From IMG/VR virus record IMGVR_UViG_3300037502_003770, positions 62,001 through 126,000 of that record: a DNA stretch of 64,000 nt; one strand, 5' to 3'. The translations under genes were made by a program, and so were the position numbers. Under the pieces are notes generated by a model. That model saw only the letters and a program-made list of their open reading frames with translations. It did not search any database and was not told the DNA's origin. Below are positions 356 through 60,637 of the stretch, piece after piece; within the stretch, counting starts at the first letter, position 1, and every line of letters begins with the position of its first letter.

Positions 356-679
356 ATTTAAATAAACTTAACAATATGAATAACATATATATTTCTAATG
401 ACTTTTTTATTTATATAGATTATGACTTGGGTTATAATTTATTTTTAATAAATTTTAAAGAAACAAATATTTTTAGCGAATATAGTCTTTATTACAAGCG
501 ACAACTTATCAAACATAAAACCAAAGATGTTTATTTTTTTTAATATTATTGAAATTATTGAAAATATAGATATTTCAGAAAAATTTTTAATTAATATAAT
601 AGAATTTTTCTATAGTAATGAATATAGTATTCATCTTGGTATTAATAATATTAAATATTTACCTAAAAAATATGTAACC

Positions 680-2052
680 GTTTATGAAAATATTATTAAA
701 TATTTCCACTTTAAACCTTTAAGAATTTAACCTCTTAACTGTCTCGGTATTACGGATAATACCTCTATCTCCTCATGTAAACAATCGGAGATTGCATTTG
801 AATACTTCTTCATTATATTATAACTACCATTTACATCAGCATTTATAACTATCCCTTTTGAAGATTTAAATAATTTTGTTGTAATCCTACTACCCAAATA
901 ACTATCTTTCTTACATAAAGACTCATTATCTAAAAAAGAACACTTACTTGTATAAGATTCCTCTTGTCTTACAAGTTTGATTCCCTTTTCAAATAACTTG
1001 TACTCTAACATAGAAAATAATTTATAATAAGGTATCATTACAAAATTTTGATTATTTTTCTTTCCATTATTAATGTCTTGTTTCCATTCTTTATTTCTAC
1101 CTACTACTAAAGTATGATAGTTTTTTGAAACTAAATGATTCACTAATAATTTACTTATTTTATGTAAATAATCTTCTATTTTGTTATTTCTTCTTAAATT
1201 TAATTTTTCTATCCTTTTAGAAGTATAAACTCCTTTATCTAACTTACTTCTAAACTCAGCTAACTTCTTATTATAATATTGATTTATATTCTTTAATGGT
1301 TTACCATTTATTATTAAAGGTTGTTTATTATCAGAAAAAGTTAATGTTAATAAATTATTAACACCTACATCCGCTGAACACACCCTTTCTTTAGAAGATG
1401 GTTTAACAAAAAGAGATGTATCTATTTTTTTAGAATAAACAACTTCTATTACATAATATCCATATTTAGGAACAATTCTTACTTGTTTAATATTAGTTTT
1501 ATTCACTATCTTACTTTCTAATAAAATAGAAGTCATACTTAACTTAATCAACCCTTTAGAAAGAAATTTCTTATCTTTAGAAATAGCACCTTTTTCATAG
1601 GTTGTGATGTATTTTCTATTTTTATCTAAATATTTAGGAATATTAACCTTTTCATTATATTTTCCTTTTAATTTAAGTTTTAATAAAGAAAAGAAAGATT
1701 TAAAGTTTTTATCTACTAATTTTAAAGTTTGTTTAGATACTTTATCAGGTAACTCTCTATAATCAAAAGAATCTCTTACTTTATAATAGAGTTGTAAATA
1801 AGAAAGATATTTTTTTGTTTCAAAGAAATGTTGTCTTACAATAAAGAGGGCATAGTTATAGAGATTTCTACTTTTAGTACAAAGAGTTTCACATTCAGAA
1901 AAGAATTTATGATTAGGAGTTATTGTATATTTTTGTACTCTATTAACTAACATTTAAAATAAGTATATTTATATATAAATAGTAAAAATAAATTATTTTT
2001 ATTAACAGAAAGGTGTATAAAATATAATATAAAAATATTAACATTTTCAAAG
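680..2052 (-). mobile_element. Non-autonomous IS200/IS605-type (tnpB-only) element
   Basis: Boundaries inferred from restoring the host reading frame. Similar GAAAAT-containing imperfect hairpins at both ends; no tnpA. Confidence 0.7.
727..1953 (-). CDS. tnpB: RNA-guided endonuclease TnpB (IS200/IS605 OrfB, IS1341-like)
   Basis: N-terminal 'SRNLYNYALF'; RuvC motifs 'ADVGVNNL', 'QEESYTSKCS', 'INADVNGSYNI'. Confidence 0.93.
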   Translation of the reverse strand: MLVNRVQKYTITPNHKFFSECETLCTKSRNLYNYALFIVRQHFFETKKYLSYLQLYYKVRDSFDYRELPDKVSKQTLKLVDKNFKSFFSLLKLKLKGKYNEKVNIPKYLDKNRKYITTYEKGAISKDKKFLSKGLIKLSMTSILLESKIVNKTNIKQVRIVPKYGYYVIEVVYSKKIDTSLFVKPSSKERVCSADVGVNNLLTLTFSDNKQPLIINGKPLKNINQYYNKKLAEFRSKLDKGVYTSKRIEKLNLRRNNKIEDYLHKISKLLVNHLVSKNYHTLVVGRNKEWKQDINNGKKNNQNFVMIPYYKLFSMLEYKLFEKGIKLVRQEESYTSKCSFLDNESLCKKDSYLGSRITTKLFKSSKGIVINADVNGSYNIMKKYSNAISDCLHEEIEVLSVIPRQLRG

Positions 2053-2152
2053 TCTGAAATTTTAACAACATATATTAAAGGATTTTTGAATTCTTCAGAA
2101 AAAAAGTATTCTTTAAATAAAAAAGACTTATTAAAAATAAAAATTGATTTTT

Positions 2153-2704
2153 ATGAAAATAACGATTTATAATAATAACTTTCTTTATATAGAGTGTTTA
2201 ACTACAGCAGTATGTTATAATTTACATATAGATAATTTTTTTGATTCATTTAGGTATAATTACATAAATTATTTTAGTCAAAATAAATACCCTATTAGTT
2301 ATGATTTTTTGTTAAGTCTTGAAAATTATAAACAATACATTTTACCTGAAAATATTTATATCTTTCTTATAAAGAAATATAAAGATAACATCAGATATAC
2401 ATCTTCTGAATTATTTAATAAATTTGGAATAATTTATTCGTCTATTACATATAATATATGTTTAGAATTAATTAAAAATTATAGTGATTTTAAATTGAGT
2501 AAAATACCATCTAAATTTAGGGACATTAATTTATGTAAAGAAGCTTTAAAAAATAATTACTTATATTTAAGTTCAGTACCTAAAAAATTAAGAAATAATA
2601 AGGAAATACTTAATGTATATTTAGAATCTTTTATTAAATATACTAAAGAAAAATACGGTATTTCTGAAGAAAATATAGCTAAATTAAAAAACTTTTCTCT
2701 TTAA
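2153..2704 (+). CDS. YxE-leader protein with DUF4116-like repeats
   Basis: MKITIYNNNFLYIE leader; IPSKFRDINLCKEAL / VPKKLRNNKEI repeats. Confidence 0.65.
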   Translation: MKITIYNNNFLYIECLTTAVCYNLHIDNFFDSFRYNYINYFSQNKYPISYDFLLSLENYKQYILPENIYIFLIKKYKDNIRYTSSELFNKFGIIYSSITYNICLELIKNYSDFKLSKIPSKFRDINLCKEALKNNYLYLSSVPKKLRNNKEILNVYLESFIKYTKEKYGISEENIAKLKNFSL

Positions 2705-2705
2705 A

Positions 2706-3275
2706 ATGGAAATAATACTTACAAATAATATTAATTTTCTTTATATAGAAAAAGATGGTTTCCCAAATATAAGTATTTATAGTTTATATTTTGGAAATAA
2801 TCTTTCTTTTTTAGAATCTTATGCTGAAAAAAATGAATTTCGTTATTTAACTAATATTACTGCTGGTTATTTTTGGGATGTTGTAAGATATCTTACAGAT
2901 ATTAAATATATTAATAAATTAGCTGAATTTTATTCTTCTATTAATGATAGTAATAATATTTCTTTTATTCATTTAAATAGAACTTTTATAAATAAAGTTA
3001 ATAAAAAATATTTAAGTACTGAATTGTTTGAAATTATTACATCTAATAAATATTATGGTAACTCACTGAGTGATATTCCTAGTGAATTTAGGTCTTTAAA
3101 AGTATGTTTAAAATTTATTAAATCTGAACCTGAACAAATATATCATGTACCAAAACATTTAAAGAATAATAAAGAAATTATTAATACTTATATATTTCAT
3201 ACAATGGAAAATGCTTGTAGAAAATATAAGTTCTCAAAAGAAATATCAGAACAATTAAAAAACCTTTCTATATAA
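2706..3275 (+). CDS. YxE-leader protein with DUF4116-like repeats
   Basis: MEIILTNNINFLYIE; IPSEFRSLKVC; C-terminal LKNLSI shared with neighbours. Confidence 0.65.
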   Translation: MEIILTNNINFLYIEKDGFPNISIYSLYFGNNLSFLESYAEKNEFRYLTNITAGYFWDVVRYLTDIKYINKLAEFYSSINDSNNISFIHLNRTFINKVNKKYLSTELFEIITSNKYYGNSLSDIPSEFRSLKVCLKFIKSEPEQIYHVPKHLKNNKEIINTYIFHTMENACRKYKFSKEISEQLKNLSI

Positions 3276-3276: not shown

Positions 3277-3840
3277 ATGAATCAAATAATAATATATACT
3301 GAAACTAATTTTTATGTTGAAACATATAAAACTTTATTCTTAAATAAAAAAACAAACTTACATATATGGTTTCTTTGTAATATAAATAATTTTTCTGATA
3401 ATATAATTATTAGAGATAAAAAAACTGATAAAAGATATATTAATTTAGAAATTAAAAGAAGAATATACGATAGTATTGAAAATATATTCCCATTTAAACA
3501 TGAAAAAATAAGTTTATTAATAGTAAAAAACTTTTTTGATGTAATAAAACATATCAAAGCTTTTAAATCTGTGAAAAATGTTACTTATGAAATAAGTAAA
3601 TATTTTATTGAAAATAATAAATATCAAAGATTACCAAGCATAAAAAAGAAATATAGAACGCTTGAAATTTGTAAGTTAACAATAAAAAATAATTCTACTT
3701 ATATAAGTGATGTACCTGAAGAATTATTAAATAACGAAGAAATCATAAATACATATCTACAAACTTTAATTAATGAAAATATTAAACGTGCTAAATTTTC
3801 TGAAGAAACTATAACTAAATTAAAAAACCTTTCTATATAA
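3277..3840 (+). CDS. YxE-leader protein with DUF4116-like repeats
   Basis: MNQIIIYTETNFYVE; KKYRTLEICKL, VPEELLNNEEI. Confidence 0.65.
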   Translation: MNQIIIYTETNFYVETYKTLFLNKKTNLHIWFLCNINNFSDNIIIRDKKTDKRYINLEIKRRIYDSIENIFPFKHEKISLLIVKNFFDVIKHIKAFKSVKNVTYEISKYFIENNKYQRLPSIKKKYRTLEICKLTIKNNSTYISDVPEELLNNEEIINTYLQTLINENIKRAKFSEETITKLKNLSI

Positions 3841-3841: not shown

Positions 3842-4327
3842 ATGAAAATTTATTTGAATTTTTATAATTATTTCTATTTTGAATCTTCTGTAAAAACGTA
3901 CTCTCTTTTGAAAAATACAGTTTATTTTCAATTAGCACTGGAGATTTTTTTCGATAGAAATTTTTATAATAAGATTTTTTCGCCACTTACTAAAAACTAT
4001 TATGATTATTCTATTCGTTATAATAAGAAATTTTCAGAAAAACTTAGTATTATGATTAGTAAGTACATGATAAAAGATAATTATGAAATATATCGTGATT
4101 TTTCTTATGAATTACAAACTTTAGAAAATACCTTACTTTATTTAGGTATTATAATTGAAAAGTACAATCACGTAAGTCATTATAATTTATCTGTTATTCC
4201 TAGTAAATTATTAAAAACTAAAGAAATTACACAAAAAATAGCAATGGTACGTATTAAATCTTTATCTTTTGAAGAAGAATTTAACCAAGAATATATTGAA
4301 TCAGTTTTAAAAATTTTAACATTATAA
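3842..4327 (+). CDS. YxE-leader protein (divergent paralog)
   Basis: MKIYLNFYNYFYFE; VIPSKLLKTKEI. Confidence 0.6.
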   Translation: MKIYLNFYNYFYFESSVKTYSLLKNTVYFQLALEIFFDRNFYNKIFSPLTKNYYDYSIRYNKKFSEKLSIMISKYMIKDNYEIYRDFSYELQTLENTLLYLGIIIEKYNHVSHYNLSVIPSKLLKTKEITQKIAMVRIKSLSFEEEFNQEYIESVLKILTL

Positions 4328-6856: not shown

Positions 6857-7791
6857 ATGAAGGATGATATTTTTTTACAAATTGATATAAATACTGGTCA
6901 CACAAAATACTTTGAACGTGACAGTAAATTTAATTTAAAACTTTCTTTAATTATTATTTATTTTACAGAAGAGACTTTTTTGAATAAAAATGGTTTGTAT
7001 CTTTTACTTATAATGAAAGATGGTAAAACCATTTTCTTTAAAGATTTTAGACATCAAAAAATAATTTATTATGTTGGAAATTAGTATATATTATAATTAT
7101 ACAACTTACAATGAAATTTTTGATATTAGCGTATTGAAATCATGTCTTAATATACAGATAAAAGAATATATAGTTTTCCATGAATATATACAATCTTTTT
7201 CTAAGTTAATTTCATATTATAATAAAAATCTTCGTAACTTAAAATATTATGTTAATAAAAATTAAACTCTCAGAACATTGTTTTTATATTGAGGATTCTT
7301 TATACTCAAGACCTTTTACAAGAAGGAACTTTGCTTTTGATTTAATTTTAAATAATTTTAATGAAATAACATATTTTTTCAATAATAATTTTTATTTAAC
7401 ATGTAATATAAATAAAAATAATATTGAATATTTTGATATTTCACTAATGACTGGTATTAAAAATTTTCTTAATTTAACGCATTATATACCAACATAAATG
7501 TTAGACATTATTTTATATATAGATTGCTTTCAATATATTGAGGCAACAATAGTGGATATCGGTTCACCAAAAAAAATCTTATTTAGATTAGATTTAAATA
7601 ATAAAAATAGAATTTTTATTGAAATAAATAGATTTTCTTTAAAGAAAGGTTATTTTTCATTAATTAACTTTATAAAAGAACGCAAAATTTTATTTAATGA
7701 TTTAGATTATATAAATATTTTAGATTTAAAATATTATTTTAAAATATCAAATTCTATCAAAGAGAAAGATTCTCACCTTGCTTTTCTCTGA
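6857..7791 (+). repeat. Four tandem small YxE-leader / LKYY-type paralogous ORFs (6857, 7071, 7249, 7498)
   Basis: Shared Y-x-E leader and YY-containing ends; overlapping or abutting start/stop. Confidence 0.7.
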
Positions 7792-9176: not shown

Positions 9177-9398
9177 ATGAAAATATTTATAGGAAATTGG
9201 TTGTTCACTTATGAAGAAATTAATTTAAAAGGTAAAATTGAAGTTTACTTTTGTATTCATTCTTTATATAACAGTCTTTTTATTTATCAACAAAAATCAA
9301 AAAAATTAACTATTTTAACTATAAATGATAATATAAAAAGAATAAGTTTTAGTCGTTATACTCTTAATGTTCATAATTTAAACTATTATATAAACTAA
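9177..9398 (+). CDS. Small YxE-leader/LKYY family protein
   Basis: MKIFIGNWLFTYEE ... NLNYYIN. Confidence 0.6.
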   Translation: MKIFIGNWLFTYEEINLKGKIEVYFCIHSLYNSLFIYQQKSKKLTILTINDNIKRISFSRYTLNVHNLNYYIN

Positions 9399-10210
9399 TG
9401 AAAAAATTATTATTACCATCTTTTATAGAAAAACCTTCTTTTAAAATAATACTTATCTCAAGTATTATTCAGTTTGTTTTAGCTATTTTATTTCTTGAAT
9501 ATAATGGTAATGAGGTATTACCTAAACCAAGTAAAGTTTTACATTCTTTGTATAGTATAGTTATTAGTAAAGATTTTATCTTTGATTTTGTTGCAACATT
9601 ATCTATGATATTTAAGAGTATGTCGATAGCTATTTTAATATCATTATTCTTTATATATTTAAGTTTAATACCTATATTTAGAAATATGGCACAATTCATT
9701 TCTAAATTAAGGTTTTTAACTTACACAGGTTTAGTATTTGTATTTACTGTTATTTTTCATAATGGTTCAGACATTAAACTATCTCTATTCTTATTTGCTA
9801 TTATTCCTTATTTTGTAACATCTTTACTTTCTTATGTAAAAGATATACCACAAAAAGAATATGAGTTAGCTTATACTTTAAAATTTAATGAATTTAAAAC
9901 ATTATATGAAGTAGTAATAAAAGGTCAATTACATACAGTATTTGAAGTAATAAGACAAAACTTTGCAATAGCATGGATGATGATTACAAGCGTTGAAGCA
10001 TACTCTATGAGTGAAGGAGGTTTAGGAACCATGATGATTAAATCAAATAAATATTTAGATATGAATAGTGTTTTTGCTGTATTAATAATAATTTTAATAC
10101 TTGGAATATTCTTTGATTATTTATTTGATGTTTTAAAAGTGTTCTTCTTTCCATATACAAATATAAAAAGGTATGAAAATTTTTGGATAAATAAACTTTT
10201 TAAGAAATGA
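9398..10210 (+). CDS. ABC transporter permease (NitT/TauT/SsuC-like)
   Basis: Multiple TM segments, 'LPKPSKV', EAA-like region, 'AWMMITSVE...GGLG'. Confidence 0.85.
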   Translation: MKKLLLPSFIEKPSFKIILISSIIQFVLAILFLEYNGNEVLPKPSKVLHSLYSIVISKDFIFDFVATLSMIFKSMSIAILISLFFIYLSLIPIFRNMAQFISKLRFLTYTGLVFVFTVIFHNGSDIKLSLFLFAIIPYFVTSLLSYVKDIPQKEYELAYTLKFNEFKTLYEVVIKGQLHTVFEVIRQNFAIAWMMITSVEAYSMSEGGLGTMMIKSNKYLDMNSVFAVLIIILILGIFFDYLFDVLKVFFFPYTNIKRYENFWINKLFKK

Positions 10211-11352
10211 TAAATATCTTTACAGAAAACTTCTTTTATTTAGAAGGTGGTGTCGAAAACCCAATACTTCATATAAGAAAATATACTACTTTCTTATATT
10301 TTAATATAAATATTGTAGATTATTTTATAGAAAAACTACGTAATTTTAAAGTTGTTTTATATCATTTTGGTGAATATAATTTCTTTAATTTAAAATATGA
10401 TGCTCAAGTAAACATATTATATTATTTACAAATTAGTATAAAAAAATCTATTCTTAATAAACTTTCTTTTCCTTTAGCTAAGTTTATCTATGATTCTGCA
10501 CAAATAGGTGGTAAACTTAGTGGTAAAATAAAAGCTAGTCATGTACCAAATAAATACCTTTTTCCAAAATGATACAAATATTTAATGAAAACTTCTTTTA
10601 TTTAGAAGGTGGTTTACAAGATAATGTATATGATAGAATACTAAGTTGTTTTATCTACTTTAATTCTTTCATTCACGATTATTTTATTAGTAAATTTGAT
10701 AAAAATAAAGTAGAACTAAATTTATATCATTTTGAGATATATAATAAGATAGAACTAAATAGAAGTTATAAAAAAATTCCTTATGAAATAACATTTACTT
10801 TAAATAAATTTTTTGTAAAAAAAGCTTCTTTTTCTTTAGTAACAAATATTTACAAATATGCAATATCTTGTGGAAATATTAAGAAAACTAACTTACCAAA
10901 GAAATTTCAAAATTTATGTTAATAAAAATAGAATTTTCAAACAACAATAATTATTTTGAAACGGAAGTAGGAAGGTTTTATTTTCATTTTACTATAACCT
11001 TTTATTATGAATGTGTTCATATTCTTGAAAGTACATTAAATTATATTTATATTAAATATAATAATGAATATTTATATAAAAATTTTCAAAATATTAATAA
11101 ACTTAATTTAAAATATTATTAGTAATTATGTATACTTATATTATAATAATAGAATTATCAAACGATATTAATTATTATGAAAGAGAGCAATTTGCGAGTT
11201 TTTATTTTCATTTTGTAATATCTTGTATTTATTATGAATGTATGCGCTTTAATGAGAGTTTAATATTAATTTATATTGAACATAACGATAAAGATTTATA
11301 TAATTATTATAAAAATATTAACAAACTTAATTTAAAATATTACTTGTTTTAA
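10207..11352 (+). repeat. Four YxE-leader ORFs (10207/10569 pair; 10916/11128 LKYY pair) between permease and ATPase
   Basis: FxENFFYLEGG shared by the first pair; NINKLNLKYY shared by the second pair. Confidence 0.7.
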
Positions 11353-11370: not shown

Positions 11371-12162
11371 ATGATTACTTACAAAAAAGAAGAACTTATT
11401 TTATCAGTAAATGACCTTTCTGTAAAGTATGGTGATAAACAAATATTAAAAGATATTTCTTTTGATATTCATAATATTACAAGACCAAATCTTACTCAAG
11501 GACAAATCATATCTATTTGTGGTAGAAGTGGTTGTGGTAAAACATCTTTATTTAAAACTATATCAGGTTTTTTAAAACCAACAACAGGAACTATAAAAAT
11601 AGGTGTTGAACAAAAAGATGTAATTATGGGTGAGGTTGGTGTTATTCAACAAGATTATCCTTTATTTAATCATAGAACTGTTTATGAAAATCTTTCTCTT
11701 AGTTTAAAAAACGTTAAGACAGATAACGAAAAGAAAGAAAAAATACATCATTATTGCGATTTATTTAATCTTTTGGAACATTTAAATAAATACCCTTCAC
11801 AACTATCAGGTGGTCAAAGACAAAGAGTATCTATATTACAACAGGTATTAACTGAAAATAAGTTTATTCTTATGGATGAACCATTTTCAGGATTAGATGT
11901 TTTAATGAAAGATAAAGTTATTGAACTTATGTTAAAGGTTTCAAATCTTGATGAAATGAATACTTTAATAATAGTTTCTCATGATATTGAATCATCTTGC
12001 GCTATTTCTGATACTGTACATATTTTAGCAAATAAAGATAATACAGGCTCTACAGTTGTTAAATCATATGACTTTCTAAAAGAAAATCTTGCTTATAGAA
12101 AAGATATTAAAGATGATTATAATTTCAAAAGAATTATTAATGAAATAAAAAGTTTAATCTAA
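11371..12162 (+). CDS. ABC transporter ATP-binding protein (NitT/TauT-like)
   Basis: Walker A GRSGCGKT, signature LSGGQRQR, Walker B ILMDEPF, H-loop SHD. Confidence 0.95.
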   Translation: MITYKKEELILSVNDLSVKYGDKQILKDISFDIHNITRPNLTQGQIISICGRSGCGKTSLFKTISGFLKPTTGTIKIGVEQKDVIMGEVGVIQQDYPLFNHRTVYENLSLSLKNVKTDNEKKEKIHHYCDLFNLLEHLNKYPSQLSGGQRQRVSILQQVLTENKFILMDEPFSGLDVLMKDKVIELMLKVSNLDEMNTLIIVSHDIESSCAISDTVHILANKDNTGSTVVKSYDFLKENLAYRKDIKDDYNFKRIINEIKSLI

Positions 12163-14254
12163 TGCAGATACTTATTTATTTAGAAAGGCATTCAAAATAT
12201 TTTGAATATTATTATGATAATTCTTTTGAAGAAAGTTTAGTATTTGAAATTAGAACATCTTTTTCGTTTGAATTTGTTAAAAATTTTATAATAGAAATAT
12301 GGGAAAAAAATAATGATTCTTGGTATTATTATAATAAATTAAAATATTACGTATGTTAAATATAGGTATTATTATTTTAAATAATGATTTTCGTTATTAT
12401 GAATATTTTATTGGTATATTTGTTTTTGAAATTGATAATTTTGTTTTTTCTGAAACTTTTGAAATTGGTTATCATATTAGACTAGAAAGTTTAAGAAAAA
12501 ACGGTAAGCGTTATTTTATTGCAAATGTTTTTAATTTAAAATATTACTTATGATAAGAATAAATTTTAATAATGGTCTTTATGAAGAATGGTTACATAAT
12601 TGTAATATATATACTTTTGTTACTTTAGTGTATTATTTTGAATGTGTAAGCTTTTTAAATTCAAGTTTTCAAATTAATGAATTAAAATTTAAAGGGAATT
12701 ATTTTTATTATAAAAATATTAATCTTCTTAATTTAAAATATTACTTATGATTCATATTTTTTCTCTTAATAAAAACATTTTTTATTCAGAAAAATTTATA
12801 TTTAATGCTGATGTATTTCTTGTTCGTTTAAATATTAATAATTATGTTGAAAGTATTATGTTTGATTATAATTTTATTCTATTAGAAATGGAATATTCGA
12901 TGTTTATAGAAATTAATAAACTTCTTAAATTAAAATATTATTTAAGTTATTACTTATGGCTGTAAATATATATTTAACAAATTCTTCTTATAGGGAAAGA
13001 CAACATGAATATTATATTAGTAATATATTTCATAATGAAAATACTATTTTCAGTTCGATATATTCTTTACAATTAGCATCTTTAATAAAAAATAAAATCT
13101 TTTATTATTCAATAGTACAAAAATATAATACTGTTTTAAAATTAAAATATTATTTATGGGAATAAAAATTTGTTTTAACAATACTACATGGAATTTTTAT
13201 ATTGAATTTTTTTCTTATAAAGAGTGTATTTTCACTATTAAAATTTTATCTAATTTAATAACATCTACATTAATTGGAAATAAATTACAAGATGTTGTTT
13301 TAAAAATAAAAAATAATACACTATTAACAACTGATTCCATTAAAAACGTTACCACTAATGTTCTTAATTTAAAATTTTATATATGATAATAAGTATTAAA
13401 ATTTCTAATAATAATTTTTCTTATGACGAAAATATTTCCAGTATTTATGATAATACTATAATAACTAACTTATGGATTTTTAAATGTTTTGAAGATAGAA
13501 TTTTTATTAACACAATAAATCAAATAATAGAAATGATTTACTATATTACAATTAATAATTTCACAGTATACAGTAATAATAAATATTATAAAACTTAAAG
13601 AACTAAAATGAGAATAAATATTAAAATAAAAACATATTTCTTTAAATATGAAGAATTTAATTTAGTAGATGAAAATATGATAACTCATCTAGACCTTTCA
13701 AATATCTTTTATTTTGAAAGAAGTTATTTTTCTTTAAATGTAGATAATTATAAAATATATGCAATTTATAAAAATAGATTTCTTTATTTTGAAAATCGTG
13801 ATGTTAATTTACTTAAATTAAAATATTATCTATGAGATTACAAATTGTTTTTAATTTTGGAGGTTATTATAGTGAACTTGATAAATATGTAATTGTTTAC
13901 ATTTATCCAAAATATTATGATATTTATTTTAATGATGTATTTTATTATATTGATTCAAATATAAAATTAATAGAAGTAAGGCATTTAAACAGCAAAAAAT
14001 ATTCTCGTGAATATAAAGATTTCATTTTAAAATACTATACATAATGAAGATAGAAATTAAATCAACATATTTTACGTATTATGAAAGACTTGGTTATGAT
14101 GTTCAAAATTATTTTTCTTTAAATTTAGATTGGATTTTTTTTAGAAGATATAGATTTATATAAAAATGAATTTATTATGAATTTTGTAGGTTTTGGTCAA
14201 AAATGTTTTTATTCAAAAAATAGTAATTTACTTAAATTAAAATATTATATATAA
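12162..14254 (+). repeat. Tandem array of ten ~65-76 aa YxE-leader/LKYY paralogs (last one frameshifted)
   Basis: ORFs at 12162,12353,12550,12747,12956,13156,13383,13608,13832,14044; period about 200-230 bp. Confidence 0.8.
14044..14254 (+). pseudogene. LKYY-family ORF with +1 frameshift in T8 tract (14135-14142)
   Basis: Removing one T gives MKIEIKSTYFTYYE...NLLKLKYYI*. Confidence 0.7.
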
Positions 14255-14258
14255 AATA

Positions 14259-15745: not shown

Positions 15746-15763
15746 CTTTAAAATTTTATAAAA

Positions 15764-24139: not shown

Positions 24140-24935
24140 ATGTTTATAAAAATAATTATAACAACAAATACATTTTTCTATTCTGAATGTATTACTAGTA
24201 TATATGGGAATGGTAGTAGTTTATTATATTGTGAATATATCAATAGTCAATACTGTTTTAATTTTGAAAAAGCTACTGAATGGAATGCTTATTTCAAAAT
24301 TAATGAAAATTTATGGATTACTTTTCAATTACCTATGTCAGATTTTCATTTAAATGATGTGTATTTATTTTTAGACTTTCGTGATAAACATTCATATAAT
24401 AATTTATCTAATTTTTTTAAAAAATTTAAACCAAATGAATATAAATATTAATACAGAACATTGTTTTTATCAAGAAATTAATTATTATTTAGAATATAAT
24501 ATTAAACCAATTTTTATTTTAATAAATAAGTTTTTTTCTGAGGAATGGTTTCTTCCTTTAATTGGTATAACTTATTTTTATAATAATTTATTTCATAATA
24601 AAACAGTTAAATCTTTAAGAAAAACTCATCTTTATGAATATATATTATTAAGTTTTTTACGTATTAGGATGAAACTTGATAAATTAAATAAAACCACAAT
24701 AAAACAAAGTGTTGATAATTTTATTCATCATACACATATAACATATTATACAGAAAATATTTGTAAAGAATTAATAAAATATTATGGTATTGAAATTATT
24801 AAATTTTTACCAAATAAATTCTTTACTAAAAAACTGTATATTTTTATGTATGATTTATTAGGCAATGAATTGCTTTCTTTACATAAAATATCAAATTCTT
24901 TCAAAGACAAAGGTTTTCACCTTGCTTTTCCTTGA
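24140..24935 (+). repeat. Two YxE-leader ORFs (24140; 24435, whose 3' end runs into tnpB copy C)
   Basis: MFIKIIITTNTFFYSE; MNININTEHCFYQE. Confidence 0.6.
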
Positions 24936-27119: not shown

Positions 27120-28789
27120 ATGACCATTTACATCTTTAATAATAATCTTTTTTATTTAGAGATACATAAAGTATTTACTCTTATAAATTCTAAATTCTAT
27201 GAATTTGATAAGGGTATTATACCTGCATTAAAAAGATTACTTGATATGACAGCTAATGATAGCAAGTTAAAAAATTTTAAGATGTATAAATACTTCTGTA
27301 ATTTTTTATACGAAGTATGTTTTGAGAAATCTAGGATATTAAATACTATCAAAGATAATGAAGTTTTAGTTTATATTATTGAAAAAAATAATCTAACTGA
27401 TGATTTAGAAACTTTAGAAAAATTATATTTTTCAAATAACGCACTTTCAGATGAAAAAATATTTAAACAAGTTTTAGATACTTTTAAACCGAAGTTTCAA
27501 TATTATAATTTTAATAATTTAAATAAAAAATTATTTGAATCAAAGACTGTTCGTAATTATATAGTTGATATATTTAAAAGAACATTACAGGCATCAAGTA
27601 TACCATTATTATCCATACCAAAACCTACCGAATATAATATATTAACTGAATCTGAATATATTGATATTGTTTCATATGGTTTTAAGAAATATCAAAATTC
27701 TGGTGTTTTTGAAACTGATAAATCTCGGTATTTTACACCAACAATACAACAGTTTATTGATTTCATTAATAAAGAAAGTAAAAATATTAAATCTTATCAT
27801 TCTTCTGATAGTGAGAATACAGTAATATCATATAAAAAATTATTTGAAATGAGACATAATCAAACCCATTTCTTTACTCAAGAACAAATTAATACTTTAA
27901 TTGACTTACATAAAGAATAAATGTTAAATATAATTTTAAGTTCAAATAAATTTGTTTATCAGGAAATAGGTCAGGAAGACTATGGATATACTGGTTATCT
28001 TAAATATAATCAATATATACCTGAAGCAGAATTTTTCGTAAGTTATCTTTATTGCAATAGTAATATTTTTCTACATGAGTATCAGGAATATGGTTTAAAA
28101 TATTCTTTTAAAGAAAAAATAGAAGATATTGAAATAGCAAAACGTTCAATTGGTACTAATAATAAATTTATAAACCATAAAACTCCTTTCTATATAGGTG
28201 GAAATTATTCATTAAATAACGACGTTAATTATTTTGTTACCTTATTACCTTTAAGAAAAATCTCTACTAGAAAAGAAAGGTATACTTTTAATAATGATTC
28301 TGAATATCATAAAATTACAACTTACAAAATAGATTTTTCATTACGAGAAAAACCATCTTTAATTAAAAAAATAAAAACATTTTTAAAGAAAGTATTATGT
28401 TAAATATTAATATTTCTTGTTTTCACAGTATTTACTTTGAAAGAAGTTTTCTACCTAATTTATTTAGTTTAAGTTTTGATTTTATTATTAGTTTTGCTTT
28501 AATTAATACAATTTTTAATGAATCTAATAATAAAAGAATATTTTGTACATTTTTAAATTTATCAAATGGTCTACCTCAAAAGATATTAAGAAAATATCCA
28601 CATTTTAGTAAACAAATTTATCATCTAATAATAGAACATAATATTAATCATATATCAAAAATTAATTTAAAAGATAGAACGTATGAAATGTATAAAATGG
28701 TTTATATTAGAAAATCACATGATACTTTTATAAAATACTTTCCAAAAGAAATCTTAGAACAAATAAAAAATGAAATTAAAAATAATTAA
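27120..28789 (+). repeat. Three YxE-leader ORFs with unrelated bodies (27120, 27921, 28397)
   Basis: MTIYIFNNNLFYLE; MLNIILSSNKFVYQE; MLNINISCFHSIYFE. Confidence 0.65.
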
Positions 28790-29738: not shown

Positions 29739-30506
29739 ATGAAATTAGAACTTACAAAAGAACAAATTGAAAATATAAATAACGAATTATCAAATAAATA
29801 TTATATATGGAGGGAACAAGGTATTGCGATACAACCTCAAGGTGTACCTTTACATGTAACTGAACCTGTTCTATATAATAGTTATATTACACATGGAGTA
29901 AGTGGTGGAAATTGTTGGAATAATAATAAATATCGGTTTGATAATGGTAAGGACGATAGGAAAGAATTTATTACTATAAGGTTAGTTCTTTCTGAATTAA
30001 GAATTCACCATTCAATAATTGAACAAACTTATAGGGATATTGATAGACTTTTAATTGAGAATGATGATTATTGTGATACTCATTATTATGGAAATTATGA
30101 TAATTATACAGTTGAATATATACCACTTTCAAAATTACTTAACTATTTACAAGGTTTTAGATTAGAAAATGATACTATTTCTTTTAATAAAAATAAAATT
30201 GATAATATTCTTACTGATTTAAGTATATTAAAAAAATCTTGTGTTAATATATTAAAAATATTTAATATTGAAACTAATGTGGATTTTATTAATCTAAATT
30301 TAGAACCTAATTTTACAAGTTATAATATTTATATTAATATATTAGATGATAATGGTAATGTAGAAGCTGATGATATTATTAATATTACAGATGAACAAGG
30401 TTTTTTAAGAGTATATGATACAAGTGAACAAGAGAGTCATATGATTCCAATAAGGTTTTTCTCAATGAATGAGAATGAAATAAAAAAAGAATTAAATCTT
30501 TTGTAA
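29739..30506 (+). CDS. Phage protein (GVSGGNCW domain) with C-terminal domain shared with 31490 and 31899
   Basis: C-terminal IPIRFFSMNENEIKKE matches IPFNFLTSTDEEI and IPLRFIYETDENIQKE. Confidence 0.55.
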   Translation: MKLELTKEQIENINNELSNKYYIWREQGIAIQPQGVPLHVTEPVLYNSYITHGVSGGNCWNNNKYRFDNGKDDRKEFITIRLVLSELRIHHSIIEQTYRDIDRLLIENDDYCDTHYYGNYDNYTVEYIPLSKLLNYLQGFRLENDTISFNKNKIDNILTDLSILKKSCVNILKIFNIETNVDFINLNLEPNFTSYNIYINILDDNGNVEADDIINITDEQGFLRVYDTSEQESHMIPIRFFSMNENEIKKELNLL

Positions 30507-36977: not shown

Positions 36978-37373
36978 ATGTCAGCATTTGAAATATTCTC
37001 AATCTTTACATCTATTATAATAACAAGTTGCTTTTTAGTTACTTGGAATATTATTAATTATTGTAAGAATTTTGTTGATAAATATAATAAAGATTACAAT
37101 AATCTTGTAGATGATTATAATTCTTTACTTAAAGAACATAAACAAAATATTGAAGACTATAATTTTCTTTTAAATGATGTAAATGAAAACCATATATTTA
37201 AATATAATATGATGGTTGATAAATATAATGATTTATTACTTGAAACAAAACTTCTTAAAGAAGAACCTAAAGAAGTACATTTAAATTTTTTACTTGAGAA
37301 AGTTTCTTTATTAGGAGAAGAATCTTTAACTGAAAAACAAAAATTATATTTAAAAAAGTTTTCTTTAAAATGA
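36978..37373 (+). CDS. Membrane-anchored coiled-coil protein with DUF6576-like C-terminus
   Basis: N-terminal TM; YN-x-LL heptads; LLEKVSLLGEESLTEKQKLYL. Confidence 0.5.
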   Translation: MSAFEIFSIFTSIIITSCFLVTWNIINYCKNFVDKYNKDYNNLVDDYNSLLKEHKQNIEDYNFLLNDVNENHIFKYNMMVDKYNDLLLETKLLKEEPKEVHLNFLLEKVSLLGEESLTEKQKLYLKKFSLK

Positions 37374-38741
37374 TACAAATTTTTAATAATAATTTTATTT
37401 ACTATGAAAGTAGTAATTTTAAAAAATGTTTAAATTTTTATTTAGGTAATCTTATTTTTATAGATACAGGATTATTATATAATAAAAGTTTTATTTATGA
37501 AGTATATAAACTTTTAGATTTAAAATATATATTAAAAGATTTAAACTATAAACATAAAAGTAGAATTAAGACATTTACTCAATATTGTTATAATTTTAAT
37601 AACGATAATAAACCTTATTTATGAGAATAAAAATATTTAATAATAATCTTTTTTATTTTGAATTAAATTCTAATAATAAAGATTACTACTATTCAAATAT
37701 AAAAATTATTGATATTGGTTTTCTTTTAAATAAAGAATTTTTATTTGAACTTTATCAAGTTATAAGAAGCGATTCTTCTATTCAATTAACAACTTTTAAT
37801 ATTCATTATTTATATGATAAATGTAGATTTTTTATTGATTTTAATTTAGAATATAATTTAAATGATAACCCATACCTTTATTTATGAAAATTTTTATCTT
37901 TAAAGAAAACTTGTTTTATTGTGAGTGTTATACCCCTTTTAGATTTGGTAGTCATATTATATTTTTATATATAAATTCTTATTTTATTGAAACAAATGAT
38001 TTAAATATAGTGTATCATTTTGATAATACTTTTGAATATTCAATACGTTTTAATTTAAAACCTTTTGACAAAACAAATGATAATATAAATCAGTTATTTC
38101 TTATTTTAAAATATGCTTCTAAAAGTAGAAGTGTAATTTTTTCAAAAAAAGAATCTTATTATTACAAAACGAAATGAGAATATTAATCTTTAATAACTAT
38201 ATGTATTATTTTGAATTTTTTCATACGCACAGTACATATTACAAAAATCCATTATATTTATATATAAATTCTTATTTTCTTGAGACAAGTAATATTGATA
38301 TTTATTATTATCTAGTAAAATATTTTGAATATAGTATTGTATTTTTTAGATATAAAAAATCACTTGAAAATATAAAAGATTTATTTTTAAAATTAAAATT
38401 TGAATATAATACTTTTGAATCCATACCTTTCTTTTATAAAAAACGAAATGAAAATATTAATCTTTAATAACAATTTGTTTTATTTAGAAAATGATTTTCA
38501 ATTCTATGAAACATTCTTATTGATAAATTCTAAAATAATTGAAACTAACAAGCTTATAACAATATTTTTATTTGTTAAACGAGATAATAAGAATTTACAA
38601 ACAGTATATAATTTTTGTAATATATCTTTAAATGTATTGTATGAAGTTGCAATGGAATATTACAAAATTAATGTTTTAAATAAACCTTTAACTTCAAGTG
38701 GTATAGCTTATAAACCTTTCTTTTATAAAAAACGAACATGA
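37370..38741 (+). repeat. Five tandem YxE-leader ORFs (37370,37621,37884,38174,38448)
   Basis: MxIxIFNNNxxYxE leaders; ATGA-type overlaps. Confidence 0.75.
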
Positions 38742-40004: not shown

Positions 40005-42457
40005 ATGCAAATAGAAATTTTTCTTGATTATGGTTTTTATTTGGAAAAAAATTATTCTTTTCCCAAACTTAAAAAACTTTTAATTAATATAATCAATCTA
40101 AGAGATAATGAAGAAAATTTTAAATCATTAAAAGAACCTGTAGATTATTTTCTTTGTAATAGCAATTTTCAAAGAGTTGAAAGAAATTATGATGGTGAAC
40201 CAATATTTACACATGTCGTTAGATATGAGTATTTACTTAGAAATTATGATTTTCAAAAGACAAAATTTTATATACCATTTGTTTCTAAATTACTTGAAAA
40301 ACAAAGTTATTTAATTGAATATATACCAACTCATTTAATAAGTTTTCCTTTTCAAGAAAAAGCTATTTCAGTAGACCCTTTTTTAATAAGATTAATTAAA
40401 ACTAATAATGAAAACTATTATTCTTTAGTAAAAACCGCTTATTTAAAAGATAAAAATATTATTAGGTTATTACAGATTCCAAAAGAATATAAAGAACAAT
40501 TAAAAAAAGATTTTCCTAATGAAAATTAACTCTTTAAAAAAGAATCTATAATATAAAAAAAAAATAAGTTAATTCTATGATGCCTTTAGAAGAAAGAAAA
40601 GCTGCTTTAGAAAAGTGGAAAGCACATTTAGATACTTTATCTACTGAAGAAGTTGATAATTTAATGAAACCAATTTTTGATAGAGTAGAAGAATTAAAAA
40701 TGCTTGATTTTATTTTTAAAATAGCTACTTTCTTAAATGAAAATAAATTTCTTTGTTTAAAATTTGAAATTATTGATGGTAAAATTGATAATCATTTAAA
40801 TTTTAATGATAGTGAGTATATCGTTCAATATCATGATAATTATTTATTAGGTGACGATAATATTGAAATTCATGATAATATACTTTCAAAAGAAAGGGAA
40901 ATATTATTAAGACAATTTTCTCTTGAATTATTTATGTCTTTTAAAGATGAAATCAAATTATTATCGCAAAATAGTAAACATTGTATTGTCTATGTTACTG
41001 ATGATATTGACTACTTAAATTATTATGTTTATAAATCTGAAACAAAAGAATCTTTTATTGAAAAAGTTGTTTCTTTTTTAAATAAATATGATTTAAAACA
41101 AATTCAGTTTGATTTATTAGTTTATTCACCATATAGAGAATATAAAAATATTTTCTTTACAAGAAATGATGGTTATATTTTTAAAGATGATTTTTCAATG
41201 CCGAAAGAATTAAAAGAAAATGAAGACTTTATTGAATTTTTAGAATACTTTTGTTCAGATATAACTCATGAGTTTATAAATGGTATTTTTAACATGAATT
41301 TACTCGTAACAATTGATAATCAAGGTAATATAAGTGAAAGTGATTTACCAGATAATTATGAGTTAGAACCTTTAAAAAGAGCTTATAAATTTGATAATAA
41401 ATATTTTTTTAATGAGAATAGAAATTCTAACTGATTATTTTGTTTATTTGGAATCACAAAAACCAATATTTAATTTTGGTTTTGGAACAGAAATTTATAT
41501 CGACACTTTTTATTGTAATCAATATACCTACAAATTTAAGTTTAATAAAAATATTGATTATTATAGTATAGCAATGCACTTATTAAAATATAGTGTCTAT
41601 CAAAATAAAAAGTTTTATAATATGTTATGTTTATCATGTATTATGTCTAATAGATTTAATGCTTTATCATATGTACCTAAACCTTTAAGAAGTTATGAAT
41701 TATGTTTAGAATCCATTAAAATGAATCCTTTTACTATTGAATTTGTACCAATTATAACAAAAAATTATTATTCTTTAGTAAAGTACGCTTTTGAAGGGAT
41801 GAAAAAATATGTAGATAATCCGTTATTTAGATTAAAACAATATGGGGTACCAGATGAGTATGTTCATAAAATAAAAATAGATTTTTTATTATGAGAATAG
41901 GTATTTATAACAATGAATTCATTTATTTTGAAAGTTCTCAATATCATATATTTGAATCTTTTCTTTTTAATAGAAATAATAACAATTTATTAAATATTGA
42001 TAGTGAAGCAATTTTATATTACTTTAAAATCTTTAGTGAATATGAAGATTTTTATTTAACAGATTTATATTATTTTTTTACAAAAAAAGTCTTTTCTTTA
42101 AAATTTGATATGTATTTTGAAGATTTTAAAGTTGGATTTTTATTTGATTATGTAAATAAAAATATTTTAAATAAAGAATTATTGTCAGTTTTAATAAATA
42201 ATTACCCAAAACTAGTTTTTAAAATAAAATATAATCAAGTTTATAGTTATTATTCTTTATTGAAAGAAGCTTTTATTAAAGATAATACTATTATAAAACA
42301 TTATAGATTTAAAAATTTACCAAAAAAATATAAAATTCGTTTATATAAAGAATTTAAAAATATTTTAGATAATAAAGAATTTAAAGATTTTTTATATGAT
42401 AGATATTGGTTTAATATAAAGACAACATACAATTTTAAACAAATCATTCTAACATAA
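40005..42457 (+). repeat. YxE-leader DUF4116-like ORFs at 40005, 41412, 41891 (unrelated ORF 40577 between)
   Basis: Leaders plus shared NYYSLVKxA / YYSLLKEA. Confidence 0.6.
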
Positions 42458-49555: not shown

Positions 49556-49951
49556 ATGAATAAAATAACTATTTTTAATGAAAATTTTATTTATTTAGAA
49601 ATGATTATTTCTAATATGGAATATTTAAATATAACAAATTTATATATAAATAAATACACTTTAAAATCAATGGATAAAGAAGATGAAAATGTTGTCTCAT
49701 TTATAGCATCTATTTTATTAGATAGATTAAATTTATTTAAAGATTGGTATTTTTATTTCTATAAAATAACAGTAGAAAGTGAATTTAGATATATAAGTTT
49801 TGTATATAATACAATAATGAATCAACAAGAATATTATGATATTATATATAAGATATATTTAAAAGATAAATCTATTATTGAAAAATATAGAGAAATTTTA
49901 ACACCTAAAGTTGTCAGAAATCTTTTAGAAAATAATAAAATTATTTCTTAA
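49556..49951 (+). CDS. YxE-leader protein
   Basis: MNKITIFNENFIYLE. Confidence 0.6.
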   Translation: MNKITIFNENFIYLEMIISNMEYLNITNLYINKYTLKSMDKEDENVVSFIASILLDRLNLFKDWYFYFYKITVESEFRYISFVYNTIMNQQEYYDIIYKIYLKDKSIIEKYREILTPKVVRNLLENNKIIS

Positions 49952-57330: not shown

Positions 57331-57423
57331 GTTTAAAACCTATTCTTTTTAAGAGTAGGTTTTTTCTTTAACAAAATATATGTTTTTTTGTAATATAAAT
57401 CAAACCTTAAAAAAAGAATCGTT

Positions 57424-58368
57424 ATGTTAACAGCTACAGAAAATACAAATACAGTAAGAAAAGTTTCTTTTACTGAAGTACATAAATCTATTATGGATTC
57501 AGCTGAACAATTAAGTAAGCTTGAATTTAATGAAAATGAGTTTATTAAGAAAGGTAATTTCTTAGAAAAAATAGGTTTTAAAAATAGTTTAGCAACATAT
57601 TCTTATAAAGAATATTCAGATGCAAAACCTTTTATTGATTTATATTCCACAAGGTATGTAAATAATAAATTCATTTTATCTTTGCAAATTCAAAGAGTTT
57701 GTGAAGACTATGATTTATATGAAAGACCTTTAGAAGATTACGTTTCTGATATTCCTATTAAAAATATTAATGATATTGAAAACTTTAAAGTTCATATCAA
57801 TGATATTGATGAGAAGTTTCTTCATATTAGCGCTAATTATAGTAAAACTTTGCTAAGAAATTTTTGTATATTTAAACATATATTGAATACTCGTTCAAAA
57901 GATTTTCAAAATCCAAATAAAACAAAATCAAATTTTTCTGAGTATGCTTTAAAAGAGTTAGGTGTTAAGTATCTTGAAGGTTCATACTATCATAGTCAAG
58001 AGATTTTTGATGAAATATTTTTAATTATTAGTAAAGATTTATCGATACAAGAGAGAAACGATAAACTAGAATATATCAATCAAGGATATTTAAAATTAGA
58101 AGATTTACCTAAATTAGGTTGGCTAAACGCCCCTTTATTAAAAATCTGTGCTACTAAAAATATGTTTAGTTTTGAAAGTATGCAAGATTCTAGTAGGTTC
58201 TTAAATTATGAAAGAAATAAAGAATCTATTAAAAGGGATGAACAATCTAAGTTTCAAGTTGAAACAGACCCTATAGTACTTTTTAAAGTAAATGGTGGTT
58301 ATTTAATTGTAACAGCTTGGGGTGATGAAGCAAATCACGATTTTGTAGTTAACAATAAATTAAACTAA
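57424..58368 (+). CDS. Phage protein with C-terminal DPIVL...YLxxTAWG domain (copy 2)
   Basis: Upstream ~110 bp near-identical to that of 56268. Confidence 0.7.
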   Translation: MLTATENTNTVRKVSFTEVHKSIMDSAEQLSKLEFNENEFIKKGNFLEKIGFKNSLATYSYKEYSDAKPFIDLYSTRYVNNKFILSLQIQRVCEDYDLYERPLEDYVSDIPIKNINDIENFKVHINDIDEKFLHISANYSKTLLRNFCIFKHILNTRSKDFQNPNKTKSNFSEYALKELGVKYLEGSYYHSQEIFDEIFLIISKDLSIQERNDKLEYINQGYLKLEDLPKLGWLNAPLLKICATKNMFSFESMQDSSRFLNYERNKESIKRDEQSKFQVETDPIVLFKVNGGYLIVTAWGDEANHDFVVNNKLN

Positions 58369-59305
58369 TATGTTTAATATCTCAGAAAATAATTTGTTAA
58401 GTACTGATGTTTTAATAAAAGAAGCATCAGTACTTACAAATTTTACTTTAATAAGTAAAGATGGTATTATTACAATTAAATTTGATAATGATATAGAATT
58501 TAATTTAAATAATTCTATTGATTTAGATAAAATTAAATTGAATCCTTCTCTTGACCTTAATATAAGTAAAATAAAAACAAATCTATTTGAATTGGATAAT
58601 AATTTATTTAATCTGATTTTCTTAGAAAAAAATAGTTTACCTAATAATAATAAATAATCATGATTACTTCACAACACTATAGAGGGTTTGTTACCACATC
58701 AAAAGTTTTAGAGAACGGTAAATTTCTTATTACTGTAATAGCTGTTTCAACAAAAGAACTTATTAAAAACTCTGTTGATTATAATAGTAAATCCGTTCTT
58801 TCAATAGATGAAAATGATAAATGGTTTTCAATTAGTATGAGAAATTTTATATTTAAATCTGATACAAGAATGAGATTTATTTTTGAAAATGATGCACCTT
58901 TTACATTAAAAAGTATTATTGATTTTGAAGAATCAACAAGGTTTAATATCTTGGATAATATCTATTCTATAAAAGGTTATCATAATGAAAACGAACCAAC
59001 TTTAATAAATATAACTTTATGAATGAAGTAGAAAAAAATCTTTATACTATGAAAATAGATGTCATACATGAAGTTTATGAACTTTATTGTTTATGTCCTG
59101 ATTTAAAAGTTTCTTATTTTTGTAATGGAGAAGATTTAGGTGAAGTAAAATTAAAAGAAATTCATCCTTTAGATTTTGGTTTCTTTAATGAAGAAACTCA
59201 ATATATTCTAATAACTGAAAAACATTTTAATATAATAAATGAATATAAGAAAAAACAAGTTTTATTAAAAGAAGAATTTATTAAACAAATGAAAGAATAA
59301 CTTTT

Positions 59306-60637
59306 ATGAAAATAGAAATTTTTAATAATAACTTTCTTTATTTAGAATTAGCTTATTTTGGTGAACAATGTTTATCTAAAGTAAAATTTTTTTATTATAA
59401 TAAAAATGTTTTTGATATAGAAAAAATGTTAAGTCATGGGAAATCTTTTTTTGCTGGCTTTAGAATTCATATTAAATATAGTACAAAACATAAAGAACAA
59501 AGAAAGAAAAATCAAAAGTTTTTTAATGAAATTAATGAAATATTAGATAATTACCATTACAGAAATTCGCTATGAGTATTGAAATTTTTAATGATAACTT
59601 TCTTTATTTGGAAATTGTTGCTTTTAAATTAAATTCTAAAACAAAAATGCAATCTTTTTATTATAATATAAATATTTTTGATATTAAAACAATGTTATCT
59701 GAAACAATGTTTTTCGTTATATTTAGATTTACTATTACAGGTAATTCATCTTATAGTAAAAAAAGATTTTATAATAAACTTATTAAAATACTAGATGATT
59801 ACGAAACTGATAATTTTTTATGAAAATAGAAATTTTTACAGATAGTTTTATTTACTTAGAAGATGAACATTTTAATCCCTTTTATTTTAATATAAATATT
59901 ATTTTTGAATTTCATCATATTACCAATCAAGTATTTTTAAGAATATTATCTAATATTAAATATATTAATTTTAGTTTTTATGATATACTAGTCAATAGAA
60001 TTATATATCTACACCCAAATACAATATTTAATGTGCATGATGACTATCCTAATTTAAAAGGTTTATTAAAAAACGTATTACTATATTCAAAATTAAATAA
60101 AGCAACAAAAAAATATATTTTTAATTACTATCAAAATATATTTGAACAAAAAGCTATAACTTTAGAAAATTTTTCTTTCTTATGAAAATTTTAATTATAA
60201 ATCAAAACTTTATTTATTGTGAAGATAGTGATTATACAAGTAAAGTTTGTTTGTATTGCAATATCTTTAGTAAAGATATTGATTCTGATATAGTTCCTAA
60301 TTATTTATTTAAAAATAATTCTTTATTAGAAAGTAATTTCATAGATAATTTTTTTACTGTTGCAATAAAAACAGACCCTATTAATATTTGTTATATTAAT
60401 ATAGATAATATAAGTATTGAATTAGCTGTTCTTGCTGTAAGTTTAAGACCTGCTAGTTTGGTTTATATATATCCATTACAATTTAATATAAATCTTTATT
60501 ATTTTTTATTTAAAACAGCATATTTAAATGATAACGATGTATTAAATAGAAACTGGTTCAACCTTTGGCAATATCGTGATGCTCCGATGGTTCAGAAATG
60601 TATTAAAGCGTTAAAAGGATACTACAACATTTCTTAA
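59306..60637 (+). repeat. Four tandem YxE-leader ORFs (59306,59572,59820,60182)
   Basis: MKIEIFNNNFLYLE and variants. Confidence 0.75.

Follow-up and report, generated by a model that had tools for sequence, protein, structure and literature searches.

An N-terminal hairpin-like module marks a lineage-specific multigene family in an uncultured T4-like jumbo phage

Why do dozens of small, mutually dissimilar proteins of a single phage begin with the same few residues? The question is raised by the window, that is, the whole stretch of 64,000 nucleotides analysed here (bases 62,001–126,000 of one contig of 312,694 bp, ~313 kb), in which a first-pass annotation had noticed about 43 open reading frames (ORFs) sharing an N-terminal leader of ~14 amino acids (aa) on highly variable bodies. 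A portable addressing tag had been suggested, modelled on the capsid-targeting sequences of T4 internal proteins. We report here that the leader marks a previously undescribed, lineage-specific multigene family of ~80–100 genes with an N-terminal hairpin-like module, and that the module would probably be a retained part of the proteins.

The contig (Ga0310151_0000017 of JGI metagenome 3300037502, a subsurface sample) has 22% GC, uses the standard code, and carries dense ORFs mostly on the plus strand; its proteome is strongly rich in I, N, F, Y, and K. By its gene content the phage is a T4-like jumbo myovirus, because it encodes a T4-type (Gp23) major capsid protein (PF07068, 197.8 bits), a T4-type S77 prohead protease at genome 199874–200542 (PF03420, 96.8 bits, at 199979–200467), a tail sheath, a DNA polymerase, and an SbcC-like nuclease. 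It is uncultured and known from metagenomes only, and DNA near-identical or related to it is also present in runs of three other studies. The tail sheaths of its nearest relatives in IMG/VR are just 38–43% identical.

The N-terminal motif and its distribution

All 42 start coordinates given by the first-pass annotation (42/42) open ORFs with the motif M-x-[ILV]-x-[ILV]-x(3-10)-phi-Y-x-E (phi, hydrophobic), so the shared leader on these ORFs was borne out, as was the near-invariance of Y-x-E, with D at 376. The Tyr of Y-x-E is present in 77/77 members, and the final residue is E in 75/77 and D in 2/77; the Tyr lies at residue 11–17, and Y-x-E ends at residue 13–19. Genome-wide, a strict regular expression matched 57 of 453 genes, while composition-matched shuffles averaged 5.7 matches and never exceeded 12, and only 10 of 1091 internal Met positions matched. 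A hidden Markov model (HMM) built from the first 20 residues and run on six-frame stop-to-stop segments gave 65 hits of at least 11.6 bits. In 63 of them the start coincides with the frame's first Met or is only a few residues off; the remaining 2 are short frames without Met. The motif is thus restricted to N-termini and far exceeds the shuffled expectation. Upon iteration, the HMM recovered 78 of 618 ATG-ORFs, 77 of them in the non-overlapping gene set; the cut-off of this set is 45 aa, and the 39-aa ORF at window 14044, which falls below it, is counted as the 78th member. Among the remaining 164 ORFs left out of that set there was no match.

The probability that the motif is a chance product of the extreme AT-rich composition is practically negligible. 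A proteome of this bias does yield similar strings, with ~16 chance matches to a relaxed pattern among the 376 non-member genes, but the excess of the strict pattern over its shuffles and the complete lack of matches among the 164 out-of-set ORFs oppose such an origin. Moreover, copies of the motif in its canonical DNA form number 5 in this phage, 2 in 241 million JGI metagenome records (one of these being in an unrelated metallo-β-lactamase-fold protein), and 1 in 596 Gb of GTDB prokaryote genomes. A composition artefact was ruled out by these three controls.

Thirty-six of the 78 members lie in the window. The seven weaker ORFs listed by the first-pass annotation (6857, 7071, 7498, 9177, 10916, 11128, and 27921) pass the relaxed pattern, and five of them carry the C-terminal YY motif of the family. 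Across the genome, the relaxed pattern adds 29 candidates, to be read against the ~16 expected by chance; since ~22 of the 29 lie inside family arrays and most have the C-terminal family motif, the count rises to ~100 genes, 43 of them in the window. The family therefore comprises about 80–100 genes, or 17–22% (about a fifth) of the phage genes. The extent first described holds for the ORFs of the window; the family is not confined to it, and further arrays lie at genome 20–38 kb, 208–211 kb, and 254–260 kb.

Judged from codon usage, the motif acts at the protein level. It is very improbable that the conserved entity is instead a nucleotide element, namely a 5′ gene segment serving translation initiation or cassette-exchange recombination, with the protein motif as its by-product. 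Such an element would agree with the codons of Ile3 (ATA in 47/55) and Ile5 (ATT in 42/58), which depart from the genome average (41% ATA, 54% ATT), with the lack of a detectable upstream Shine-Dalgarno signal, and with inter-strain breakpoints that fall at gene boundaries. However, non-member genes likewise favour ATA at codon 3 (28/45), so the Ile3 bias is partly a general effect near the start. The information content upstream of the ATG is nil, family and other genes being alike without Shine-Dalgarno, and within the motif the nucleotide information mirrors residue conservation codon by codon. Codon choice at the variable (x) positions is diverse, and the distance between I and Y differs among members by as many as 6 codons. 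For one inter-strain ortholog pair (59820), the ratio of nonsynonymous to synonymous substitution rates (dN/dS) is 0.11. Over the whole genome, positions −20 to −1 of the start codons hold no Shine-Dalgarno signal in any gene class and are mildly A-rich at −17 to −12. This presumably fits a host that initiates translation without such pairing, such as a member of the Bacteroidota.

Conservation past the Glu, variable bodies, and the search for relatives

The shared part had been described as a leader of only ~14 aa, and this limit did not hold. In members longer than 84 aa, a phi-phi-phi-N motif (a predicted third strand with a near-invariant Asn at its end) follows 5–35 residues past the Glu, at residues 17–52; it was found in 24/34 of these members, against 51/303 of the remaining proteins (Fisher p=2e-10), and shuffles of the same proteins gave a mean of ~10. 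The short class (55–84 aa) comprises at least 44 genes and ends in x-[YF]-Y, typically L-K-Y-Y, in 31/44; among 18 seemingly other small proteins with this ending, most proved to be unrecognised family members. Weaker copies of the hairpin recur inside family bodies, where they are 10–20 times denser per residue than in other proteins, and the protein at window 13608 consists of three tandem hairpins followed by LKLKYYL.

The residue pattern resembles a β-hairpin, with alternating Ile, an N/D/E/T-rich turn of variable length, and a hydrophobic second strand. AlphaFold2 (AF2) with family alignments predicted strands at residues 2–7 and 12–17 of a short member, and at 2–6, 10–15, and 40–43 of a member with DUF4116 repeats, in which confident helices follow the third strand. 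The hairpin is a structure predicted from low-confidence models and from this pattern. Taken together, the third-strand motif, the C-terminal KYY, and the internal hairpins argue that the leader is the best-conserved strand pair of a small β module and not a free-standing peptide. A ubiquitin-like β-grasp fold, which likewise has an M-x-I-x-V...L-E-type hairpin, ~70 aa, and a conserved tail, was considered and rejected: 35 short members had no Pfam or PDB sequence match, the low-confidence AF2 model is all-β, the hairpin not being followed by a helix, and Foldseek with the short-member model returned nothing below E=2 from PDB.

When the hairpin was removed, BLAST and jackhmmer linked only small groups in which tandem neighbours are the closest paralogs. 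Outside such groups no similarity was detected, and none of the recognisable enzymes carries the leader; on both points the initial description stands. The largest body group consists of 10 leader proteins with DUF4116 (PF13475) helical repeats, linked by jackhmmer; the PF13475 score is 34.9 bits for window 2153 (cut-off 24.9) and 19.7–22.8 bits for 2706, 3277, and 41412, the match concerning the bodies of this subgroup and not the hairpin module. Genome-wide there are 40 DUF4116 matches, and the same repeats occur in ~15 phage proteins without the hairpin. Thirteen of these are headed by another shared N-terminal module of ~35 aa (consensus ..KIDLxSLNxFLLEKGD..). The proteins with this second module are 173–1659 aa long, and most are encoded amid head and tail genes at 156–198 kb (genome 156837–198659); it is also present at genome 7915(-) and 10001(+). 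Thus, one body type occurs with two alternative N-terminal modules. The idea of a portable tag is upheld insofar as the hairpin is separable from the DUF4116 body type, but it is more than a 14-aa peptide, the short members being a full-length family with a conserved C-terminus. The ..KIDLxSLNxFLLEKGD.. module often holds L-L-E, which is of the T4 type L-x-E, with a Glu that some proteins replace by D, S, or R. It may be a better candidate for a virion-addressing propeptide than the hairpin motif.

No Pfam, PHROGs, NCBIfam, or PDB sequence-profile match to the hairpin module was obtained; the first three gave just DUF4116 in some bodies. Against PHROGs at E<=0.01, the 35 short members produced one spurious match (phrog_10616, ribonucleotide reductase, E=0.0063). 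Foldseek of a DUF4116 member against AFDB clusters gave DUF4116 matches only, almost all from residue 16 or later. Leads to GT4 and GNAT proteins from the ESM Atlas were discarded; their scores were <0.9 and probably reflect just the 'MKIxIF' start, and the Atlas model has a predicted local distance difference test (pLDDT) value of 0.42. In word-indexed searches of 5.8 billion proteins, nothing came back apart from proteins of the phage itself and close variants of them in related strains. A profile search run exhaustively over 1.84 billion representative proteins recovered just two proteins, both of this phage; because the 44-position profile gives a true member ~37 bits at best, it could overlook distant relatives. 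A DNA-pattern scan of IMG/VR yielded 44 matches, all single and spurious. The hairpin was not found in ten related IMG/VR records (those with the 38–43% identical tail sheaths; one is 287 kb long and 86% complete), nor was DUF4116 in the five of these records tested.

The composition of the arrays differs between strains. A 5-kb contig (L145, Logan SRR30952577) is collinear with window 57.4–62.1 kb (57400–62120), with flanking proteins 88–100% identical. It is without member 59306, has an unrelated 124-aa ORF in place of member 60182, and keeps orthologs of 59572 and 59820. In a contig from a third study, 59024–59571, the stretch holding 59306, is deleted, and there is a 1.1-kb insertion at 60630–60664. 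The divergence of family orthologs between strains is about equal to that of neighbouring genes; change between strains occurs mainly via gain, loss, and replacement of whole genes.

Possible roles of the module

We lean towards the reading that the ORFs belong to one massively expanded, lineage-specific multigene family and that the hairpin is its retained structural or docking N-terminal module. A small N-terminal β-sheet would begin with a hairpin made of M-x-I-x-I (strand 1), a turn rich in Asn/Asp, and phi-phi-Y-x-E (strand 2). Longer members would continue with a third, Asn-ended strand, and minimal members of ~65 aa with two further hairpin-like units and then a KYY strand at the C-terminus. 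The family would have grown by tandem duplication, fast divergence, and fusion of the module to, for example, DUF4116 helical repeats. The module would stay uncleaved on the mature protein and most likely provide a common folding nucleus together with a shared surface for interaction or oligomerisation, and the variable parts would do different jobs, probably in host takeover or counter-defence.

Several points weigh against this reading. The N-terminal part of the AF2 models is of low confidence (pLDDT 45–75). Full-length alignments of the short-class HMM to longer members are weak, and a 65-aa domain shared by the whole family is thus at most tentative. A recognition signal would equally account for the invariant Y-x-E and the anchoring at Met1, and the encoded S77 protease is one that cleaves after Glu.

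A bolder version, which we regard as rather unlikely, takes the hairpin for a portable docking domain through which ~100 fast-changing effector bodies are connected to a single hub. The prohead core, the phage AAA/ClpS machinery, or a host protease or chaperone could be that hub. If true, the module would be a bacteriophage counterpart of the F-box- or MIX-type adaptor systems and would serve a swappable arsenal for host takeover or counter-defence.

The original analogy with T4 internal proteins fared poorly, and we consider it quite improbable. According to it, a leader of 14 residues would attach to the prohead core and bring the cargo into the head, S77 would cut after the Glu, and a large, variable arsenal would be injected. 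The Met1-anchored segment, 11–17 residues long with a near-invariant Glu, the T4-type S77 protease and Gp23 capsid protein encoded by the phage, and the unrelated bodies that turn over between strains all suit such a scheme. Characterised prohead proteases of T4-like and giant phages all cut C-terminal to Glu, and T4 targeting sequences have 10–20 residues (PMC5694885, PMC3012670). The cleavage motif is L/I-x-E in T4 and A/S/G-x-E in phiKZ-like phages (PMC5694885). The family has the Glu-ended segment of 10–20 residues and the protease, but it lacks a cleavage motif matching that protease as well as similarity that stops at the cleavage site. The would-be P3 is an invariant Tyr (77/77) and neither L/I nor A/S/G, and conservation runs past the Glu to the third-strand Asn and the C-terminal KYY. 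In the capsid protein of the phage, L-F-E50 and L-N-E60 immediately precede the block matching mature T4 gp23 in an alignment made by eye, and we take them to be its likely L-x-E cleavage sites. The scaffold-like protein, encoded at genome 201760–203208, contains 19 L/I-x-E, and Y-x-E is absent from both the scaffold and the capsid protein. Members with internal Y-x-E hairpins would be cut into pieces. In addition, ~80–100 different cargo genes would lack precedent, most family genes lie amid replication and auxiliary genes outside the head module, and no head protein carries the motif.

Little probability likewise attaches to a recognition tag for a single hub other than the capsid, namely a degron or docking signal for host Clp or Lon, the phage AAA ATPase, or ClpS. 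Early proteins could thereby be removed on schedule, or bound host targets handed over for degradation. It would account for the strict anchoring at Met1 in a fixed register, and the window encodes both a ClpS homolog (PF02617, 62.9 bits) and, at 16622–17761, a classic-clade AAA ATPase. The M-basic-phi-x-phi start is also loosely like published N-terminal ClpX recognition motifs. Yet ClpS reads N-terminal F, L, W, or Y and not Met, which second residues such as K, R, E, N, and I would retain, and the extended conservation and internal repeats suggest a folded element.

Expansions this large usually mark the front line of virus–host conflict. Were the module to act in docking or addressing, phages would have a new way to organise variable effectors, and the module would be a short, portable, usable tag. 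If it is just a folding nucleus, the family would be a natural example of small-protein birth via hairpin duplication and fusion in an extremely AT-rich genome.

The family in its genomic setting and among known systems

The members in the window are collected in Table 1. Genes for RNA ligase, DNA methylase, peptidyl-tRNA hydrolase, ClpS, AAA ATPase, and parts of ABC transporters lie around most of the arrays.

Table 1 Hairpin-family members in the window (positions counted from the first base of the window).
Position	Strand	Member	Basis
376..543	+	Member, 55 aa, Y-x-D variant	Motif start, HMM
2153..2704	+	Member, 183 aa, hairpin + DUF4116	Motif start, HMM, Pfam, AF2 model
2706..3275	+	Member, 189 aa, hairpin + DUF4116	Motif start, HMM, Pfam
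3277..3840	+	Member, 187 aa, hairpin + DUF4116	Motif start, HMM, Pfam
3842..4327	+	Member, 161 aa	Motif start, HMM
6857..7084	+	Probable member, 75 aa, short class ending in IYY, N-terminus extended by 4 residues	Relaxed criteria only
7071..7265	+	Probable member, 64 aa, short class, LKYY	Relaxed pattern
7249..7497	+	Member, 82 aa	Motif start, HMM
7498..7791	+	Probable member, 97 aa	Relaxed pattern
9177..9398	+	Probable member, 73 aa, short class, NLNYY end	Relaxed pattern
10207..10572	+	Member, 121 aa, tandem paralog of 10569	Motif start, HMM
10569..10922	+	Member, 117 aa	Motif start, HMM
10916..11122	+	Probable member, 68 aa, short class, LKYY	Relaxed pattern
11128..11352	+	Probable member, 74 aa, short class, LKYY	Relaxed pattern
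12162..12359	+	Member, 65 aa, short class, first of 10-gene tandem array	Motif start, HMM
12353..12553	+	Member, 66 aa, short class	Motif start, HMM
12550..12750	+	Member, 66 aa, short class	Motif start, HMM
12747..12965	+	Member, 72 aa, short class	Motif start, HMM
12956..13165	+	Member, 69 aa, short class	Motif start, HMM
13156..13386	+	Member, 76 aa, short class	Motif start, HMM
13383..13598	+	Member, 71 aa, short class	Motif start, HMM
13608..13835	+	Member, 75 aa, short class, hairpin unit present three times in tandem	Motif start, internal copies
13832..14044	+	Member, 70 aa, short class	Motif start, HMM
14044..14163	+	Truncated member, 39 aa, adjoins 1.38-kb repeat element	HMM
24140..24451	+	Member, 103 aa	Motif start, HMM
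24435..24935	+	Member, 166 aa	Motif start, HMM
27120..27920	+	Member, 266 aa, longest, no Pfam domain	Motif start, HMM, Pfam
27921..28403	+	Probable member, 160 aa	Relaxed pattern
28397..28789	+	Member, 130 aa, body linked to DUF4116 group	Motif start, HMM, jackhmmer
30506..30742	+	Member, 78 aa	Motif start, HMM
37370..37624	+	Member, 84 aa, first of 5-gene array	Motif start, HMM
37621..37887	+	Member, 88 aa	Motif start, HMM
37884..38177	+	Member, 97 aa	Motif start, HMM
38174..38467	+	Member, 97 aa	Motif start, HMM
38448..38741	+	Member, 97 aa	Motif start, HMM
40005..40529	+	Member, 174 aa, DUF4116-group body	Motif start, HMM, jackhmmer
41412..41894	+	Member, 160 aa, hairpin + DUF4116	Motif start, HMM, Pfam, jackhmmer
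41891..42457	+	Member, 188 aa	Motif start, HMM
49556..49951	+	Member, 131 aa	Motif start, HMM
59306..59575	+	Member, 89 aa, missing from related strain	Motif start, HMM, strain comparison
59572..59823	+	Member, 83 aa, related-strain ortholog 94% identical	Motif start, HMM, strain comparison
59820..60185	+	Member, 121 aa, ortholog 89% identical, dN/dS 0.11	Motif start, HMM, strain comparison
60182..60637	+	Member, 151 aa, DUF4116-group body, unrelated ORF instead in related strain	Motif start, HMM, jackhmmer, strain comparison

Three copies of a 1.38-kb element (88–89% nucleotide identity) lie at window 7740–9113, 14237–15618, and 24884–26260 (-). Each contains a minus-strand ORF of 435–437 aa (MPYTTD...) with no Pfam or PHROG match, borders a hairpin-family array, and breaks the plus-strand gene flow; the element is probably an undescribed mobile element. 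A tRNA-Met (CAU) gene at 15672–15746 (+) stands directly beside one of the copies. An IS605-type TnpB (OrfB_IS605 and Cas12f1-like TNB domains) is encoded at 727–1953 (-) and is unrelated to the 436-aa repeat ORFs; ORFs N-terminally similar to TnpB are located at genome 195915–197117 and 216501–217736. The ClpS adaptor homolog mentioned above, at window 22382–22654 (+), also matches NCBIfam ClpS models and is preceded by a 540-aa ORF (20743–22365) with no family match. Between family arrays are cellular-type genes for an ABC permease (PF00528, 9398–10210), an ABC ATPase (PF00005, 11371–12162), and a peptidyl-tRNA hydrolase (PF01195, 185 bits, 38738–39277), all on the plus strand. Another tandem paralog family occupies 43409–46219 (+); its proteins of ~82–107 aa have an MNKTIEQLFQ-like start and an internal YFLPFK, and the two tested had no Pfam match. 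Lipoprotein-like signal peptides were seen on many small phage proteins.

Among known proteins, those with DUF4116 (PF13475) resemble 10 of the family bodies, and the fold-search matches run from residue 17 on; DUF4116 is, however, just one of several body types in the family, and the public DUF4116 proteins as well as the phage's 15 others are without the hairpin module. The internal proteins IPI, IPII, and IPIII of T4, with their capsid-targeting sequence (CTS), share with the family a short N-terminal Glu-ended segment on unrelated, fast-changing small proteins and a phage that encodes an S77 prohead protease and a Gp23 capsid protein. The family differs in having Tyr and not Leu/Ile at the would-be P3, in conservation past the Glu, in its internal hairpin repeats, and in its number (~80–100 genes versus 3–5); its genes are mostly outside the head module, and the motif shows no similarity to the T4 CTS.

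Conserved N-terminal parts that address many C-terminal parts to one machine are also known from the MIX and RIX domains of type VI secretion and from the MuF-domain toxins of phage heads. Those domains have at least 100 aa and sit on toxins with immunity genes, whereas no toxin/immunity-like pair and no sequence match was found for the present family. The multigene families (MGF) of African swine fever virus and the poxvirus ankyrin proteins with a PRANC/F-box-like end combine one conserved terminal module with a variable remainder, have known partners such as Skp1, and belong to eukaryotic viruses. The present family resembles them in its tandem, diverging paralogs, its large share of the genome, its short terminal module, and its gain and loss between strains; here, the host is bacterial and the module is an orphan, putative β-hairpin.

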